From: Macrostomum lignano
Lineage: Eukaryota
Assembly (NCBI GenBank): GCA_002269645.1
Contig: NIVC01001610.1
Location: 124,001-188,000 of the forward strand
Direction of reading: 5' to 3'
Length of the DNA stretch: 64,000 nt
Shown here: one piece after another, positions 6,800 through 57,500 of the stretch
Numbering within the stretch: position 1 is the first letter of the stretch
Layout: every line of letters starts with the position of its first letter
The notes under the pieces: generated by a model
Database searches by the model: none
What the model was told of the DNA's origin: nothing
What the model saw: only the letters and a program-made list of their open reading frames with translations
Position numbers and translations under genes: made by a program

Positions 6800-8345
6800 T
6801 CAATGAGTATACACTTCACCAAAAAATTCTGGCGGGGCACGGGCCCTCTCACTTCGGCGCAATACAGGCTGTTCTGGATGCTCTGGAACATCAGCAGGGG
6901 CGCCGACCGGGGCGCCGATTGGGGTGCCGGCTGGGGCGCCGACCGGGGCGCCGACTGGGGCGCCGGATGGGGCGCCGGCTGGGACGCCGTCAAATCTCAG
7001 GTCGTCCTCGTCAGGATTGTGCAGTTGCGCCGCTGGTTGCAATTGAGGTGCTGCAGCTGGACTGGCCGTGTTGCATGGCTTCAGGCGATTGAAATGCACC
7101 ACCCTTCGCCGTCGTGCATTGGCCTCGTGCTGAATGCGGTAGGTGACGTCTGAGATCTGCTTTTTAACGCGCCATGGCCCAGTCCACCATCGATGAAATT
7201 TTCGGCTCTCGCCTCGCTTCAGCGCCGGATTGTGCAGCCAGACCAGATCGTTCTCGCTGAATGCCTCGCCGTGGCACCTCCTGTCGTACGCTGCCTTCTG
7301 GTGCAGTTGCGCTGCCGCCAAGTTTTGTCGCGCCCTCTCGTGCGATGTCTGCAGCCGGCTCCGCAGCTCGGCCACCCATTCACAAGGACGTTGCCTATCC
7401 GGCGCCAGACCTCCGTATGCCAAGTCCAGTGGTAGTCGCAGTTCCCGGCCGAAATGCATCGCCGAAGGTGTCTGACCAGTCGACTTGTGGACTGAAGTGC
7501 GGTAGCCCATCAGTGCAATCTGCAGATGAAGATCCCAGTCTCGCTGATTCTCGTTCACCCATGCTCGCAGCAGCTGCACCAGTGTCCGGTTCATCCGTTC
7601 GCAACCGCCGTCTCCTTCAGGGTGGTAGCCTGTCGTCCGAGTCTTGTCGATTTTCAGCAGCCGCATCGTCTCTTGAAACAGCTGTGACTCCCAGTTCCGA
7701 CCCTGGTCGGTGTGCACCGACTGCGGGACTCCAAAGCGAGCCACCCACTCGTTGACAAACGTCCGGGCTGTGGTCTCAGCGTCTTGAGACGGCAGTGGAA
7801 AGGCCTCAGTCCACTTGCTGAAGGTGTCGATGACTACCAGGATGACTGAATTTCCACGATCGGTCCTCGCAGGCCCACCATGAAGTCCATTTCCAGTCGC
7901 TGGCCAACGCTGCCGACCGCCATGCTCTGTAGAGGTGCCCGCCTGTGCTGGCCAGAATCTTTCAGTGTCGCGCATTCGAGGCACGCAGCACACCAGTCAG
8001 TCACATCTGCTGTCATTCCAGGCCAGTAGAGTCGCGCCCTGATCTTTTCTATGGTCTTCTGCGGTCCGCAGTGGCTGCCGCTCGTTCCAGCATGAGCTTC
8101 GACAAAAACATCGCGCTGTAGACTCTCTGGCACCAGCAGCTGCTGACAAAAGGCGCTGCCATCTTCGGATTCCCATCGGCGGCACAGCAGTCCGTTCACC
8201 AGTGTCAGCCGCTTAAACTCGGACAGCAGTTGCCGCTGCCGATTGCTCCAGCCGTCCGTCTCTGCCTTATCCGGTGGTTGCCCATCTCGCAAGCAGTTCG
8301 CCAGCTTCTGCATGCACCGATCCTCTGCCTGTGCTCGTCGAATCG
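6800..8345 (-). pseudogene. Gypsy integrase (HHCC zinc finger, DDE core, GPW motif), frameshifted
   Basis: HAGTSGSHCG...WCAACLEC; MDF, TDQG and CERMN catalytic motifs; WTGPWRV. A 1-nt loss near 7868 (GLxRTDRGN) splits it into ORFs 7834..8313 and 6800..7993, and it is out of frame with gag. Confidence 0.9.
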
Positions 8346-8906
8346 CGCTGTTTCAACTGTATCAGCGAATGTCGCCTTTGCCTGCATCTGCGTCTGCATT
8401 CGCACAGCTGGGTCCCTCAATCCGGATAGAAACCGACCTTTGAGAAGCTCGTCCTTCGCTGTCACCGACGTCTCCTGCTCGGCACCTGCTTTCGTGTCCA
8501 TCAGACTCGGGAACGCACGCTTTGCCGCAACGATCAGGGCATCGGAATAGTCTGCAACCGACTGACCGTCCTTTTGAGTCAGATTGAAGAACTGCGCCTG
8601 CAGCTCAGCAGAGGATGTTGATGGCCGAAATCGATTTTTCAGAGCCTTCTCAAAGTCGTCGTAGGACAGGGCAGCATCCAAATTGCTGGCCGCTTGATAT
8701 GATTTGTCGTCGAGGAATGACAGCAGAGCATTCTTGCGCTGATCCACAGGAAGAGATGATGCGAAATTGTTGAATCGTGCCAGCCAAAGTTCAAAGTCTT
8801 GTCCATGCTGGTATTGAGGCGGCCGCAAAAACATGTTGACAAAACTAGCTTGGGGCTGAGTCACCGCCACTGTAGGGCTCTCTGCACTGCCTTCATTTTC
8901 AGTCAT
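8345..8906 (-). pseudogene. Truncated Gypsy gag
   Basis: FELWLARFNNF...AQFFNLTQKDGQSVADYSDAL...LLKGRFLSGLRD is retrotransposon gag-like; it ends at a deletion junction near 8345. Confidence 0.8.
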
Positions 8907-8911
8907 AGCCG

Positions 8912-8923
8912 CCGCTGCCACCA
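8912..8923 (-). promoter_or_regulatory. Primer binding site complementary to the tRNA-Leu 3' end
   Basis: Plus strand CCGCTGCCACCA equals the 3' end of metazoan tRNA-Leu(AAG) plus CCA. Confidence 0.75.
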
Positions 8924-8924
8924 A

Positions 8925-12010: not shown

Positions 12011-12394
12011 TGTATTGAAACTATTCCATGAATATACAATTAGTTTAAACATTTTCTAACACCTACAAACGTGTTTTTATCTATAATATTATTATCTAAT
12101 TTGATGCTACTAGACAGTAGTAACATAACGTCATCGTGTGGCTAAATTAACCATAAAACAATCAAAAGGAATTTCCGAAACCATTTTTCTTCACAAGGAG
12201 AATCCCGGGGGTTAAATAAGGATAAACAAGTGCATGTTGCTTTGTTTCATTCTACTAAATTTGATTGGTCCGCTAAAGGATGACGTCATCGCCAAATGAA
12301 GCCTGATTGGTCCGCTACAGGATGACGTCATCGCTAAATGGATCCTGATTGGTCAATCAGCGTATTAACGTCCTAAGTACGCTAAAAAATAGCG

Positions 12395-15300
12395 TCACTT
12401 TTTGGACAACACTTCATTGGCTAGCTCAGAGATGACGTCATACGCGTAGCGAATATCGGCAGCCTCGCAGAATTCGGAGCACACGGCAAACCGAATGAAG
12501 AAGGTGTCGCTGGCCTCGAATTCGGAGGCGATGAGGTGAATCCGGCCGTCCACCCTAATACGGCGGTACAGCTCGCGACTCGGTGCGTTGGCGCCCTGAA
12601 ATTTATAGGAAATATCAATAACTGAATTTTAGGACGGTTTAGGCTAAGTATAATTTTAGCGGATGAAATGCACTGCTTCTAGGAAGCAAGTTGACCTTTG
12701 CTAATGCTCTCGGAATGATCAGGAAAACCGGAAATTCTTCGTGTCGTTGCAAAAACCTCAAAATACCAAAACCGGGAATCAATTTCCAAAGACGGAAAAC
12801 ATCCCAGAAAGTGGAAAACTTCGCAAAACTGGAAACTTACCAAAACTGGAAACTTCCCAAAACTGGAAACTTGTCCCAAAACTGAAAACTTTTCCCAAAA
12901 CTGGAAACTTTTCCCAAAACTGGAAACCTTTCTTAAAACTGGAAACTTTTCCCAAAACTAGAAACTTTTCCCAAAACTGGAAACTTTTCCCAAAACTGGA
13001 AACTTTTCCCAAAACTGGAAACTTTTCCCAAAACTGGAAACTTTTCCCAAAACTGGAAACTTTTCCCAAAACTGGAAACTTTTCCCAAAACTGGAAACTT
13101 TTCCCAAAACTGGAAACTTTTCTCAAAACTGGAAACTTTTCCCAAAACTGGAAACTTCCCAAAACTGGAAACTTTTCCCAAAACTGGAAACTTTTCCCAA
13201 AACTGGAAACTTTTCCCAAAACTGGAAACTTTTCTTAAAACTGGAAACTTCAAAAAAATTACTTCGTTAAAACCGAAAAATCTGCTACCTGACGAGAATT
13301 AGAATTTGGTGTCCATATAAATTACATTTTTTTAGTATTACTTTTGCAAAAGCACACGGGTACTTTTTGCACTTGATTCGATTCTTTCTTTCTAGACTCA
13401 GGTGAGCAAAGATTTTTGTCAAAGAAAGCCGAAAACTTCAAAGGAAAAATAACTTTTTATATCAGCTCCCTTGCTATTTGCCAATAGAAGCCTGTCTTTG
13501 CCGCTGCGAACAATAATTAGGGCAGGCACAAATCATTAAAATTACTCATGCAATTTAGACAAAAAAATCGAGACCGGAGCTCAGGTGCCACCATGTGCGG
13601 ACCCGCAGCTTTCGCTTGTAGAAATTCGATCACCTCTTGCAGGCATTTTGCCTTAGAATTCGCCACTGCCCCCCCCCCCATCCCAATTATCTGTATTTTT
13701 ACAGCGTCAGGCGCCTCGGTTGAGCATTCTTACAAGAGCAAGGATTGCGCACTTTGATGCAAAATGCGTACAGGATGTACATTTGTACAGAGTGTACAGG
13801 GTGTACAGGTGTACAGGTGTACAGTGGCCTTGACTTCCTGACATCTGCGGCACGTACACACTCTGCACCATTGGGGTTGTCCCTCACGGACGAAAATTTA
13901 ATTGATTTTACAGCGCGAGCCTCAAATTAATGCGGATGCACATGGAACCGAACCCGGGGTACCCTGGCTTCAGAGTCAGCTGCGTCAACGCGCTGAGCTT
14001 CTCTGCATCCTGAGGCTTTGGGAATGCTGCGGCCCCAACTGAATTCGAGCACTAAAGAGCGTCCCAAAATGTTAATCGTCCCATTCAGAACCTCTCTGCC
14101 CCATTCACCCTAGAGCCAAGCCTTGCCTTGAGCCGGAAGCAGACCAGGCCGAACAAGACCTCCTCGACAATTTCAAAACGGTCATCCGCAGTCACCAGCT
14201 CTTCAAACTGCTTGGCCAGACGGATATGCTGAAAAGGAGACAATATGAGTATTCATGCCTCAGACTCCTGATTAATTGTTAGGATTTTACGCTGGACAAC
14301 GTCGGGAGACGCACCTTCCGAATGTAGCTCTGCAGTCCCTCGATGCCGTAGGAGCGAAGAACGAACCAGATCTTCAGCGAGCGAAAACGCCGACCCAACG
14401 GAATCTGCCAGTGCTGCAGTTGTACAATGCAATCTTTGTCTTACGAGTGAGTGCAACCAATGTACATCCTACGTGCAACCAATGTACATCCTACGTGCAA
14501 CCAATGTACATCCTACGTGCAACCAATGTACATCCTACGTGCAACCAATGTACATCCTACGTGCAACCAATGTACATCCTACGTGCAACCGAATGTACAT
14601 CCTACGTGCAACCAATGTACATCATACGTGCAACCAATGTACATCCTACGTGCAACCGAATGTACATCCTACGTGCAACCAATGTAAATCCTACGTGGAA
14701 CCAATATACAATATAAATCCTACGAATAAACCAAAATACATCGTAAATGTACGTACAACCAACAGAAGTACACCCAATGTACTTTTAATAAAGCTCACCC
14801 GATAGTCGGGCACCAGGCCGCTGAACTCGTGCTGCAAGTACAGCGGATCAACGTTGAACGTGTTGACTACTTTAGACGAGTCCTTCAGCCACAGAGCCGA
14901 GCAGTCGAAGGTGATTTGCAGCCACTTGCCCGGGTTGAAGTTGAACGAGTCCGCCAGCTGTTTGGGATGAAAACTGTGCGTGGACTTTTAAGCTAATTGA
15001 GCTGAATGTGAAATCAAGGCTAGATGCATTTTCGAGCTCTGGAAATGCCTATTGAGCTTCGAGCTCTGGAATAGTCAAGCACTCAGGAGTCTGCGGTCTT
15101 TGGTTTTTCGTTCGTCATAATCGAGACCTTCGACATTTCAGCACGCTGAAAAGTTTGTCGCAGACACACGCTCACATAGGGTGTACAGCGGCCCTGACTT
15201 CCTATTCGTCAGGCATGTACAGTCTGTGCCTTGGGGAAATCGAACCAAGGATGGTGCCACAGTCGGACGCGTTTACCTCTGAGCTGCTCTGCCACAGGTC

Positions 15301-18300
15301 GGTAACGTACTCAAGACTCAACAGCAAATTTTTCCCTTCAATTTGATACGTCTTAACTACTGTTAGTAGCGTCCATCCATACCTCGATTCCGTTGGCGAT
15401 GTGTCGGTACTCGGGGCAGATCAGAGATGCGCCGGCGTAGGCTGCGTCCACGTGACACCAGAGACCTTCGCTCTGGCCTGCGGCGAAAAATTTTATGCAT
15501 CAAGTAAGACATTGTTTCGTTTGTGTAATTTAACTCCATCAGAGTTTGCTGAAACTACTCGGTGGCTTACAGACTTCTCCCAGTTCAGCCAAGTTGTCGA
15601 AGGCGCACGAGTTCGTTGTGCCTAGCGTAGTAATCAGCTGGATTGTTGTGTGTTATTGCATTGACTTAGGATTCTCACTCTTTGATTACGAATTGCGGTT
15701 AAGCCAACAAAATAGTTTTACTGCCCCTCTGAACCCCTCACCACTGCAGCCACCTCACTCCCTGCCCCTCCGAACCCCTCACCACTGCAGCCACCTCACT
15801 CCCTGACCCTCTGAACCCCTCACCACTACAGCCACCTCACTCCCTGCCCCTCCGAACCCCCCACCACTGCAGCCACCTCACTCCCTGCCCCTCCGAACCC
15901 CTCACCACTGCAGCCACCTCACTCCCTGCCCCTCTGAACCCCTCACCACTACAGCCACCTCACTCCCTGCCCCTCCGAACCCCTCACCACTGCAGCCACC
16001 TCACTCCCTGCCCCTCTGAACCCCTCACCACTACAGCCACCTCACTCCCTGCCCCTCCGAACCCCTCACCACTGCAGCCACCTCACTCCCTGCCCCTCTG
16101 AACCCCTCACCACTACAGCCACCTCACTCCCTGCCCCTCCGAACGCCTCACCACTACAGCCACCTCACTCCCTGCCCCTCCGAACCCCTCACCACCGCAG
16201 CCACCTCACTCCCTGCCTCTCCGAACCCCTCACCACTACAGCCACCTCACTCCCTGCCCCTCCGAACCCCTCACCACTGCAACCACCTCATTCACTCCCT
16301 GCACCTCTCCAAAATCCAAAATCCATGGCTGCACCAACCAAAATAGGCTCGAGTCCTCTGGCCCGGTCTTCAGCCACAGCTCGGGCCAAGGTGTCGCCCC
16401 TCAGCGAGCGCTTGCCATCTGTAGGCAGCTTGCGCAACTGCACAAAAGCCAGCATTGCGGCCCGCTCCACCGAAGAGTGGCTCTGAGAAAGCAGATTTTG
16501 AAAAAATAATGTTTTTTTGAAAGCAGATGTTGAAAAAAGGACGCAAATCACAATTAAGAATTCGAGCGGAAGGTCAAAAAATTTTTAAGAAAATTTGAAG
16601 GCACTTCGACAGGCAATTTCGAGTGATTTTTTCCACTAATCTTTTGAAGAACCACCTGCATTGATAGGGCGAACATGTTTGTCAGAATTTTTCAGAATTT
16701 GTCAGAATTTGATCGGAAGCGAATCCCTGATGACCGGAAGCGAATCCTTCATGACCGGAAGTGAATCCCTGATGACCGAAAGCGAATCCTTCATGACCGG
16801 AAGCGAATCCCTCATGACCGGAAGCGAATCCCTCATGACTGGAAGCGAATCCCTCATGACCGGAAGTGAATCCCTCATGACCGGAAGCGAATCCCACCTG
16901 ATCGGACACGAATCCCTCATGACCAGAAGCGAATCCCTAATGACCGGAAGCGAATCCCTCATGACCGGAAGCGAATCCCTTATGACCAGAAGCGATTCCC
17001 TAATGACCGGAAGTGAATCCCTCATGACCGGACGCAAAATCACCAGCCACTCACCTGATCGGAGGCGTAGGCCACCAACCGCGAGAGCGCCAGACTCGGC
17101 TGCTGCTGCGCCTCCGGTCGCTGCGCCTGCAAGCGCTGGATGGCCAGGTTCCTGGCTGACAGGAAGATCACCAAGGTGGCCTCGCTTGCCGAGCCCTGGA
17201 TCACGCCGCCGCCCCCGCTTCCGCCGCTGCCGCCGCCAGCTGGGAACAGGAAGTGATCGGGCAGGCCCAGAGCCTTGGCCAGCCAGTCCATCATGACAGT
17301 CTCAAGTTCCGTGCAAGCTGGACTGGCGATCTGAGTGCAGGTTGTACATTCGGTTCACTTCATTCTAATTTAACACATTTTTTAATTTCCTAAATAGGAC
17401 TTTCTGGATCATTAAGGCTTTGTCTCTTCTTTGAACCAGCTTAGCTTAGCCTTATACATGATACATGATAACACCATGATCCAGATTACATGTACATGAT
17501 TACACCTGCCCTAATAGGTAGATGTGCAACCGACAGCTCACTGGACTGGGGGTCGCCATACACCCTCAATTAACCCAGCTAATGCTGGCACCCATTTTAC
17601 AGCTGGGTGAACTGAAGCAATGCAGAGTTAAGTGTCTTGCTCAAGGACACAGATTTTTCCAGAGGGATCCGGAATCGAACCCCCGACCTTCAGGTCGTGA
17701 GTCCAAGGCTACATACAAACCCCCTTGGGACCAAACTGCGCTGGCTACCTCAGTGATGATGCATTTTTCTTAAAATTCGTTCTGTTTTCGTCTATCTTCA
17801 CTAACAAGCCTACTTATAGTAGAAAAATACAGTCAAGCAAGGCTATTTTCCATGAAAACAGCTGCACAAACGCACCCAGGAGAAGCCAATGCAGCCAATG
17901 GCGTCACTCAGCATGTCGGCCAGAATTGACGGAAAAGTGTTGGCCGTCGGGTAGTAGGCGTGGAACTGCGGATGGTGCCAGTTTGTCACCTGGGCGTGGG
18001 GTGAGCACGGGTTGATTGACGCTCAGTTGACAAGAGCTAGCTGAGAACAGATACCCCAGTCTCACCCCGGACACACCAGCTAGCTGGGAACAGATACCCA
18101 GTCTCACCCCGGACACACCAGCTAGCTGAGAGCAGACACTCCAGTCTCACCCCGGACACACCAGCTAGGTGAGAGCAGACACTCCAGTCTCACCCCGGAC
18201 ACATCAGCTAGCTGAGAACAGATACCCCAGTCTCACCCCGGACACACCAGCTAGCTGGGAACAGATACCCAGTCTCACCCCGGACACACCAGCTAGCTGA

Positions 18301-18651
18301 GAGCAGACACTCCAGTCTCACCCCGGACACACCAGCTAGGTGAGAGCAGACACTCCAGTCTCACCCCGGACACATCAGCTAGCTGAGAGCAGACACCCCA
18401 GTCTCACCCCCGACACACCAGCTAGGTGAGAGCAGACACTCCAGTCTCACCCCGGACAGCACCACCCGCTCCAAGTCGGCCATGACGTTCTCAAACAGTT
18501 CCCCAGCCTGTGGCGGCTCTGCTGGGATCAGCGGTCGCAGATAGCCCGGCCGGACGTCCGGGACCACCTGGCGCTGGCGGAAGCTGGCAAAATAGTCGGC
18601 GATGAAGTCCACCATCGCCTTGCCCTGACGGCGAAACTCTTCGCGATCCAT
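12395..18651 (-). CDS. DDC: Group II PLP-dependent aromatic L-amino acid decarboxylase (DDC-like), ~485 aa, 10 exons
   Basis: Exons (-): 18651-18451, 17989-17876, 17330-17055, 16482-16339, 15637-15571, 15477-15383, 14957-14799, 14413-14315, 14228-14127, 12595-12395. Motifs [69 protein letters not shown]. Intron 9 uses a GC donor. Confidence 0.93.
12790..13250. repeat. 19-bp minisatellite (ttttcccaaaactggaaac) in decarboxylase intron 9
   Basis: Direct observation. Confidence 0.95.
14445..14700. repeat. 22-bp minisatellite (gtgcaaccaatgtacatcctac) in decarboxylase intron 7
   Basis: Direct observation. Confidence 0.95.
15160..15293 (-). mobile_element. tRNA-headed SINE fragment (family 2 core)
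   Basis: A-box AGCTCAGAGG and B-box GGTTCGATT, followed by the core tgtacatgcctgacga..gaagtcagggccgctgtacac shared with 36994-37353. Confidence 0.7.
15725..16290. repeat. 41-bp minisatellite in decarboxylase intron 4
   Basis: Unit cctgcccctccgaacccctcaccactgcagccacctcactc. Confidence 0.95.
16705..17030. repeat. 21-bp minisatellite in decarboxylase intron 3
   Basis: Unit atgaccggaagcgaatccctc. Confidence 0.95.
17499..17724 (-). mobile_element. tRNA-derived CORE-like SINE in decarboxylase intron 2
   Basis: On - strand: GGTTCGATTCC B-box, then tgtgtccttgagcaagacacttaac...cagctgtaaaatgggt, which resembles the MIR/CORE domain; same family as 55623-55928. Confidence 0.8.
18040..18460. repeat. 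42-43 bp minisatellite that includes the decarboxylase exon-1 splice donor
   Basis: About 10 copies of gtctcaccccggac (GTCCGGG|GTGAGAC on -). Confidence 0.9.
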
Positions 18652-54533: not shown

Positions 54534-57500
54534 ATGCGCATCGGTTTTGTTGGTGCTGGACGTATGGCTCAAGCCATCGCCAAGGGCTTCACTAGTCGAG
54601 GTAAATTAAGGAGTTCATATTTATTGATATTCCTAACTTGCAATACATTTTTCAATAGCTTTGAGCTAATCCCAACCAATTTAATTGCCAATTTCTGCCA
54701 GGCATCATTAAGTCAAGAAATATCTGGGCCAGCGACCGTGCAGAGAAAACTCTGGAGAGGATTTCTACAGTAAGTTTAAGGTTTTGCTCTATTTTCAATG
54801 GTAAATTAAAGTGTTGAGTGTGTAGTGCGGGCTAATAGATTTCCACAGCTTTTCAAGACTACCAATAAATTCAATGATTCAATTGAAAAAAACACTGAAT
54901 TTCAATACAAATTTCACATACATACGAGTATATGTATTACTCCTCAATTATTATTCACATAATCGTCAGCACCAAGTTTTTGTTCAATGTTAAGTTCCGC
55001 AGTTTTATGATTTGTTAAACTGACTCGTCGCCTGTAGGAGCTCCGCATCAACGTGACGCACGACAACCGCGAGGTCGTGGAGCACAGCGACATTCTTGTG
55101 CTGTCGGTAAAGCCGCAGGTGATGGACACAGTGCTAGCTGAGCTGTCAGACCTGACCGACCCCTCCAAGCTGGTGGTGTCCGTGGCCGCAGGCGTCACCC
55201 TGGACCACCTGCAGAGCCGTCTGCTGCCAGACAGCCGGGTGATCCGGCTGATGCCGAACACGCCGATTCTGGCTAACGCTGGCGCTTCCGTTTATTGCGT
55301 TGGTAAGGCAACGAAGCCGGAGGACGGGCCGCTGATTGAGGCGCTGTTCAAATCTGTTGGCACCTGCGACTACCTGCCTGAGAACCTGATGGACGCTGCT
55401 ACAGGTCTGAGCGGGTCCGGTCCAGCGTTCATCTTTGAGGCCATCGACGCCATGACCAGTGCAGGTGTACAAATGGGCCTGCCTCTGTGAGTAGATTGCT
55501 TTGTCCGTTTCTTCTTTTATTGTCCTGGTTATAGTTAATGCTTAGCATGGTCATCAGTTCTATTGCTAGCTTACTATACTAGGGGTAGCATTCTAGTGTA
55601 CAAGTGGTTGTATCCACCAGTAGGGGTTGTAGCCTAGTGGTCAGAGCGTCGGACTCCGACTGAAAGGTCGTGGGTTCGATTCTTGACCCACGTCGAAACA
55701 ATCTGTGTCCTTGAGCAAGACACTTAACTCTGCATTGCTTCAGTTTACCCAGCTGTAAAATGGGTGCCAGCATTAGCTGGGGTAATTGAGGGTGTGTGTG
55801 GCGCCCCCCCCCCCGCCCTTGAACTGAACAGCCGTACGCAGCCTTCAGATGCGCCGCGCATTAGCTGCGGCTGAGCTGTCGGTTGTACATCTGTCCATTT
55901 AGGCAGGTGCCTTCAAAAATAAGAATAACAAATATTGATAATATTATTACTATTACTTACTCCACTAGCCAATTGTGAACACTGTTATTTTTAGTTTTAA
56001 TCAGCTATCTGTAAACACGATTGAAGCGACTGAGTCAGTTACAGCTGGTCGGAGTCATGCCAAAGCAATAAACTAAGCGCTTTATGCATAAAAGATAAGA
56101 AGTAGGAAAGCTTTGCCTAACATCAAGGTGTAGGTAGGTCAGCCTTTCAAGTCATATTAGGGCATTATAGATAGCACTCAGTATTTTGTGATATACCGGT
56201 AGATTACTGTAATCTGCTTTCTATGGTTCTGTAACTAGGTTTAGTAAGCCAGTTCGCAAGACGCATGCATGCGGTTTTGTTCATACTTACGGTAGCTGTT
56301 CACAGCGGCACAGTTGGTTGTAATTGACGCTACCTATGCAAGATAGTCACCGATCGAGGGTTAATCTTGATGAATCCTGGGTAGTGAATTTTTTGTTGCC
56401 GCAAGAGTGTCATAGCGGCTACGTTTTATAGCATATTTATTGTATTGAGTTTATTGTATTTAGTGTTTGTACTGACAATTGCTTACTTCAAATAGCTCAC
56501 AGGGGGCATTAAGCACATTTGTAAATCAAAGGAGGGTTTCATATCCAAAAATCAGCTTCTTTCACAACCCCGACACTTCACATCTCCGATACTTCACCTC
56601 TGGGACACTTCGTATCTCCTACACTTCACATCTCCGACACTTTACATCTCTGACACTACATCTCTGACACTTTACATCTCAGACACTTTACATAATTGAC
56701 ACTTTACATCTCCGACACTTTACATCTCTGACACTACATCTCAGACACTTTACATCTCAGACACTTTACATCTCCGACACTTTACATCTCTGACACTACA
56801 TCTCTGACACTTTACATCTCTGACACTTTACATCTCTGACACTTTACATCTCCGACACTTTACATCTCTGACACTACATCTCTGACACTTTACATCTCTG
56901 CGCTTTACATCTCAGACACTTTACATCTCCGACACTTTACATCTCTGACACTACATCTCTGACACTTTACATCTCTGCGCTTTACATCTCAGACACTTTA
57001 CATCTCCGACACTTTACATCTCAGACACTTTACATCTCAGACACTTTACATCTCCGACACTTTACATCTCCGACACTTTACATCTCAGACACTTTACATC
57101 TCCGACACTTTACATCTCCGACACTTTACATCTCAGACACTTTACATCTCAGACACTTTACATCTCAGACACTTTACATCTCCGACACTTTACATCTCAG
57201 ACACTTTACATCTCTGACACTTTACATCTCTGCGCTTTACATCTCAGACACTTTACATCTCTGACACTTTACATCTCTGACACTACATCTCTGACACTTT
57301 ACATCTCTGCGCTTTACATCTCAGACACTTTACATCTCCGACACTTTACATCTCAGACACTTTACATCTCAGACACTTTACATCTCCGACACTTTACATC
57401 TCAGACACTTTACATCTCAGACACTTTACATCTCTGACACTTTACATCTCTGACACTACATCTCTGACACTTTACATCTCTGACACTTTACATCTCAGAC

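Follow-up and report, generated by a model that had tools for sequence, protein, structure and literature searches.

The closest described relatives of the gene studied here are human and pig DOPA decarboxylase (DDC, also called aromatic amino-acid decarboxylase, AADC, EC 4.1.1.28, decarboxylating L-DOPA and 5-HTP; PDB 3rbf, 8ora, 1js3), which share a family with the insect tyrosine decarboxylases Tdc1/2 (TDC) and animal histidine decarboxylase (HDC). The residue before the lysine that binds pyridoxal 5′-phosphate (PLP) tracks the substrate class, Asn in TDC and Ser in HDC (PMC2809104), and this residue, 302 in human DDC, is among the few pocket positions that separate DDC (His) from both. His302 forms a hydrogen bond with the phosphate of PLP, and its distance to the 3-OH of carbidopa is 3.8 Å (PMC2809104, PMC8003434). 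In fly TDCs the same site is Asn, and it has been suggested to help determine whether DOPA or tyrosine is recognised (PMC2809104; PMC8003434; PMC12078590), His or Asn discriminating DDC from TDC (PMC2809104). This specificity role was proposed in 2010 and has hardly been tested since. In pig DDC the substitution H302Q alters the surroundings of the cofactor, reduces decarboxylation and introduces half-transamination, although the residue is not essential (PMC8003434); our literature search on H302A, H302N, H302G and H302S mutants and on Macrostomum decarboxylases found nothing relevant beyond this H302Q variant. A second position, 354, is reported to set DOPA versus histidine specificity (Komori 2012, as cited in PMC7306523). 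We describe here a DDC-family gene of the flatworm Macrostomum lignano, located on the minus strand at 18651-12395 of a 64,000-nucleotide stretch of contig NIVC01001610.1 (positions 124,001 to 188,000 of the forward strand; assembly GCA_002269645.1; hereafter the window), whose product carries Gly at position 302 on an otherwise canonical DDC background.

The Pfam profile PF00282 (Pyridoxal_deC) matched residues 35-419 of the window protein over its complete length (profile positions 1-375 of 375, E=1.6e-142). Alignment scores decreased from human DDC (624 bits) to HDC (539) and Drosophila DHPAAS (511). The protein was 57% identical to human DDC at full length and 57-61% identical to the DDCs of other phyla. 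We scanned exhaustively 1.84 billion cluster representatives with HMMER; at E<=0.001 the family numbered about 15,000 of these. The 107 sequences of our neighbour-joining tree were the window protein, its M. lignano relative A0A1I8HY23 (P0004), 15 named DDCs and every near-full-length representative from the scan. The window protein and P0004 were sisters in 100/100 bootstraps and, in this distance-based tree, the window protein was placed among the bilaterian DDCs and separated from the HDC (PSK/S354) and TDC (PNK/S354) clades in 96/100; the phylogeny that the initial annotation had proposed as a check has thus been run, and it groups the protein with bilaterian DDCs. The AlphaFold2 (AF2) model (predicted TM-score 0.83), a cofactor-free monomer, matched the fold-type I architecture, with human AADC 8ora as top Foldseek match (E=9e-53, TM 0.75). 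Judged by homology, the gene, already automatically annotated as AADC, is a member of the DOPA/aromatic amino-acid decarboxylase family. Identity as an HDC was rejected, since the protein has G354 and NPGK, not Ser354 and NPSK, and lies outside the HDC clade; likewise, identity as an animal tyrosine decarboxylase was rejected on the absence of NPNK and Ser354 and on its position outside the TDC clade.

We rebuilt the gene by hand as 10 exons with a coding sequence of 1458 nt, giving 485 amino acids. Human numbering was set by alignment to human DDC (3rbf), without shifts. Its parts are as follows.

Exon 1, 18451-18651, minus strand: start ATG at 18651-18649; residues 1-67; N-terminus aligning with human DDC Met1.
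Exon 2, 17876-17989, minus strand: residues 68-105, with loop 1; N70 (AAC) at 17981-17983; Y79-Y80 (TACTAC) at 17951-17956.
Exon 3, 17055-17330, minus strand: residues 106-197; Gly/Ser-rich insert and the SASEAT phosphate-binding segment.
Exon 4, 16339-16482, minus strand: residues 198-245; His199, the H192 equivalent (CAC), at 16477-16479.
Exon 5, 15571-15637, minus strand: TLGTT, with the T246 equivalent.
Exon 6, 15383-15477, minus strand: HVDAAYAG, with the D271 equivalent.
Exon 7, 14799-14957, minus strand: residues 300-352; NFNPGKW, in which NPGK (AAC CCG GGC AAG) occupies 14925-14936; Gly309 (human 302; GGC) at 14928-14930; PLP lysine Lys310 at 14925-14927; catalytic-loop Tyr339 (human Y332; TAC) at 14838-14840.
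Exon 8, 14315-14413, minus strand: IPLGRRF; Gly359 (human G354; GGT) at 14393-14395.
Exon 9, 14127-14228, minus strand: ends in FRLK; GC donor.
Exon 10, 12395-12595, minus strand: stop TGA at 12397-12395.

The open reading frame and splice sites were intact over all 10 exons, with eight GT-AG introns and one GC-AG intron. With the GC donor of exon 9, the product agrees in length exactly with the human sequence FRLKGSN. An alternative GT donor 18 nt downstream, taken by the gene model of P0002, would add six residues (ARLGSR) far from the active site. Public M. lignano models of several AADC groups were visibly mis-spliced, with exon 8 missing, 5′ read-through or avoidance of the GC donor.

The residues that the initial annotation had read from the letters, namely N70, Y79-Y80, H192, NPGK, the loop Tyr and G354, were all recovered at the same positions in our reconstruction. 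Window residues K310, D278, H199, T253 and N307 aligned with human K303, D271, H192, T246 and N300. Besides position 302, the active site was canonical at W71, Y79, T82, I101, F103, H192, T246, D271, N300, K303, Y332, L353-G354-R355 and R447. The DDC consensus His302 (NPHK), near-universal and not by itself defining, was absent and replaced by NPGK. Human and pig DDC match the protein at all PLP-binding and catalytic residues, among them H192, D271, N300, K303, Y332 and G354; the window protein differs from them by H302G, F80Y and H70N and by the Gly/Ser-rich insert near residue 137.

How unusual these residues are was assessed in 496 retrieved family members aligned to the window protein, the best-scoring few hundred of the approximately 15,000 cluster representatives. 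Among the 439 in which the PLP lysine was aligned, the preceding residue was H in 340, S in 36, N in 31, G in 17, Y in seven, Q in five, and I, D and T in one each. The Tyr variant NPYK occurred in several mollusc or unnamed DDC-like sequences: P0135 (Lymnaea), P0481, P0237, P0238 and P0271 (Aplysia cluster). Residue 302 followed the clades, His with G354 in 322 sequences, Ser with S354 in 30 and Asn with S354 in another 30; the insect Tdc1/2 and animal HDC proteins, in their separate clades, thus differ from the window protein also by S354. Of the 17 Gly carriers, two come from M. lignano and the other 15 belong to a lamprey cluster labelled ‘histidine decarboxylase-like’ (P0220, P0349-P0362; XP_061414377, S4RM64 and others), and Gly302 together with G354 was found among the aligned members only in M. 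lignano. In the lamprey cluster, Petromyzon has exactly NPGKW (SFVVNPGKWMMV), while Lampetra and Lethenteron have NMGK; unlike the window protein, these proteins lie in the HDC clade and carry T354 and A82, their Gly being of independent origin and present in multiple species. From the aligned sequences, NPGK is thus rare, has a precedent in lampreys and arose at least twice. The other sampled flatworm DDCs, from Schistocephalus (P0003) and Calicophoron (P0222), have NPHK, unlike the window protein.

This distribution upheld the view that a Gly before the PLP lysine is unusual. It also altered the original picture of a mosaic DDC/HDC active site. Y79-Y80, taken as an HDC hallmark, was present in 22 of 184 DDC-type sequences (12%), from molluscs and beetles (Haliotis, Solemya, Mya, Mactra, Leptinotarsa and others), versus one of 22 HDC-type sequences, and Drosophila DHPAAS likewise has Tyr79-Tyr80 (PMC12078590). 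N70 was rare (6/269) and occurred also in Strongyloides DDCs. Both N70 and Y80 are common to the window protein and its NPHK sister P0004 and are therefore older than the Gly. Since YY is no HDC hallmark among the sampled sequences, and G354 and the clade are those of DDC, the ‘mosaic’ shrinks to a single H302G on a DDC background.

The best database matches of the window protein were M. lignano proteins. Where its gene model is correct, A0A1I8IMY2 (P0002) shows no difference from the window protein, and it probably represents the same locus. A0A1I8IWA1 (P0001), with differences at about seven residues, likewise carries NPGK. The sister A0A1I8HY23 (P0004), 69% identical, shares N70, H73 and Y79-Y80, together with a further 30 departures from the DDC consensus that are specific to the lineage, but, unlike the window protein, keeps NPHK. 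Further members are a more divergent NPHK protein (P0246) and, beside the TDC clade in the neighbour-joining tree, an NPSK/S354 enzyme (P0230, Mlig019317); at least four AADC-family groups can thus be distinguished in M. lignano (NPGK; NPHK, P0004; divergent NPHK, P0246; NPSK/S354, P0230/P0376-P0378). The idea that the window protein, itself a G354 protein, stands in for an HDC was rejected as unnecessary, the species having this separate NPSK/S354 enzyme. An alternative NPHK exon or a tandem duplicate was ruled out in the window: tblastn with the protein found no second exon 7 and no second copy anywhere in it.

A sequencing error in the Gly codon, which the initial annotation had named as one way in which its proposal could fall, does not account for the data: His (CAY) and Gly (GGC) codons are two base changes apart, so that a single miscall cannot explain Gly302, and the non-identical copy P0001 also encodes NPGK. 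Both points indicate that Gly302 is real, and the change is rare and previously undescribed. Constraint was then compared over the 265 columns with >=80% conservation among 114 DDCs of other phyla. Private deviations numbered 16 in the window protein and 15 in the NPHK sister, with 33 deviations shared by the two, and mean identity to the 114 DDCs was 0.582 for the window protein versus 0.573 for the sister, the window protein being higher in 95/114. By this measure constraint is relaxed in neither paralogue. The other private changes of the window protein were conservative (S/T, Y/F, V/I) or adjoined the lysine (L306Q, V307I, K334Q), leaving H302G as the sole radical change in the active site.

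The explanation that we prefer, with a probability of roughly one half, is that the gene encodes an intact, selectively maintained M. lignano DDC paralogue, amine-forming, with a modest shift in substrate preference and/or PLP affinity. By homology, it would be a group II, fold-type I, dimeric PLP decarboxylase that most likely still forms amines from aromatic amino acids. Lys310 (human K303) would hold PLP as internal aldimine, Asp278 (D271) would pair with the pyridine nitrogen and His199 (H192) would stack on the ring; after CO2 loss, Tyr339 (Y332) of the mobile loop would protonate Cα, so that the product would be the amine and not the aldehyde. The change of His302 to Gly would have followed a duplication in the macrostomid lineage, the other duplicate keeping NPHK. 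With it goes the imidazole, which normally touches both the phosphate of PLP and the meta-hydroxyl of a catechol substrate; that corner of the pocket would become larger, and recognition of the meta-hydroxylated ring and/or PLP binding would plausibly be weakened. It is plausible from the residues involved that this loss shifts substrate preference, and function would then be divided between the NPGK copy and its NPHK sister by sub-functionalisation, rather than by new chemistry.

Several points weigh against this explanation. A water molecule may take the place of the imidazole with little effect; by analogy with the impaired pig H302Q enzyme, the Gly may merely weaken the protein. The AF2 model serves for the fold only and says nothing on pocket geometry, because residues 78-103 and 335-359, corresponding to mobile loops 1-3, have pLDDT < 50; these loops order only in the holo dimer (PMC8003434). 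Finally, full-length and two sub-fragment searches for orthologues in other Macrostomum species, by which the age and fixation of the His to Gly change could be judged, gave nothing above 69-70% identity outside M. lignano.

The main rival, which we regard as possible and clearly less probable, is that the protein is an ordinary DDC in which Gly302 is near-neutral, a water or a neighbouring side chain filling in, with dopamine and serotonin made as usual and the NPHK sister redundant. The canonical state of every other catalytic residue, the DDC-type Gly at 354, which goes with a DOPA/indole-type pocket, and the identity to DDCs of other phyla, slightly above that of the sister, all agree with such an enzyme. 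However, His is retained in 322 of the sampled G354-type sequences and Gly occurs with G354 nowhere else among them, which argues that the residue is not freely replaceable; H302Q also perturbs pig DDC (PMC8003434).

A more distant departure appears improbable: a specialised enzyme, with a wide G302/G354 pocket, that has left catecholamine and serotonin synthesis for a substrate without a meta-hydroxyl. Tryptophan is the most attractive candidate, its decarboxylation to tryptamine feeding a non-ribosomal peptide synthetase (NRPS) that makes beta-alanyl-tryptamine, a reproductive signal of flatworms, with the NPHK sister left to neurotransmitters. Gly at both positions should give a roomier pocket devoid of the meta-hydroxyl contact (inference from PMC2809104), and a non-neuronal tryptophan decarboxylase role is described for the planarian and schistosome members of the family, which act with an NRPS to give beta-alanyl-tryptamine (PMC11214079, PMC10252128): planarians need AADC together with an NRPS for this compound (PMC11214079), and genes of the AADC family take part in signalling between male and female schistosomes (PMC10252128). 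Yet planarians use a single aadc in neurons and gonad alike (PMC11214079), so that a dedicated paralogue is not needed, and no NRPS, tyrosine hydroxylase (TH) or tryptophan hydroxylase (TPH) gene lies near the decarboxylase gene in the window, where the long open reading frames are only repeats and retroelement remnants. By analogy with these flatworms, a link of the gene to the beta-alanyl-tryptamine pathway is an attractive but unsupported possibility.

We consider it very improbable that the reaction itself has changed, to aldehyde synthesis, oxidative deamination or half-transamination. Pig H302Q does gain half-transamination (PMC8003434), Y80 is of the DHPAAS type, and residues 79, 80 and 192 tune switching between DDC and DHPAAS (PMC12078590). 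Against this, Y79-Y80 is common to many ordinary DDCs, and the residues at the decisive switch positions are those of a decarboxylase. Aldehyde synthases are recognised by Asn192 (insect DHPAAS) or by a loop Tyr to Phe change (plant aldehyde synthases) (PMC12078590); both marks are absent here, where His199 and Tyr339 are kept. Because both known switches (H192N and loop Tyr to Phe) read as decarboxylase, an aldehyde product, and with it an aldehyde-synthase role, is unlikely. Hence, from the earlier suggestion of an altered substrate range or a new amine or aldehyde product, the aldehyde falls away and the altered range stands as a reasonable hypothesis only.

A weakened duplicate decaying towards a pseudoenzyme, or a Gly created by assembly or sequencing, is hardly credible: M. 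lignano has many duplicated genes, including the AADC groups above, and H302Q lowers activity (PMC8003434), but neither the reading frame nor the splice sites are damaged, the protein is as constrained as its sister (16 versus 15 private deviations), two base changes would be needed, and the second copy P0001 also has the Gly.

A natural Gly variant in an otherwise canonical DDC, together with a sister that keeps His, offers a clean pair for isolating the effect of residue 302. If the specificity shift is true, an extra branch of amine synthesis would exist in a flatworm used as a model of regeneration and reproduction; if there is no shift, His302 would be shown to be dispensable; the scope is modest either way. 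Should the wide-pocket interpretation be true, the lamprey Gly would show that the family has taken this path to new specificity repeatedly.

The window contains more than 30 large repeat arrays, and the long introns of the decarboxylase gene each carry their own minisatellite, at 18035-18464, 16710-17032, 15721-16290, 14451-14710 and 12820-13250 (periods 43, 21, 41, 22 and 19 bp; 10-23 copies). In intron 1 the array starts at the exon-1 donor and copies this donor, GTCCGGG/GTGAGACTGG, about 10 times, giving many potential cryptic donors. Downstream of the gene, about 40 bp beyond the stop codon, a 42-bp unit is repeated 2.2 times (12262-12354); the full units each carry the palindrome GATGACGTCATC, with a CRE/ATF-like core, present in two exact copies versus 0 expected by shuffling. 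Remnants of a Ty3/gypsy-type long terminal repeat retroelement were found on the minus strand at 6800-8924, with open reading frames containing integrase core, integrase C-terminal, SH3 and gag domains. Intron 2 holds, at 17560-17710, a short dispersed repeat with a tRNA-like box B (GGTTCGATTCC), of which an 89% identical copy lies 38 kb away at 55645-55795; ARAGORN called no tRNA, so the repeat is probably a SINE-like (short interspersed) element. Similar-looking tRNA-like stretches occur in introns 6 and 9.

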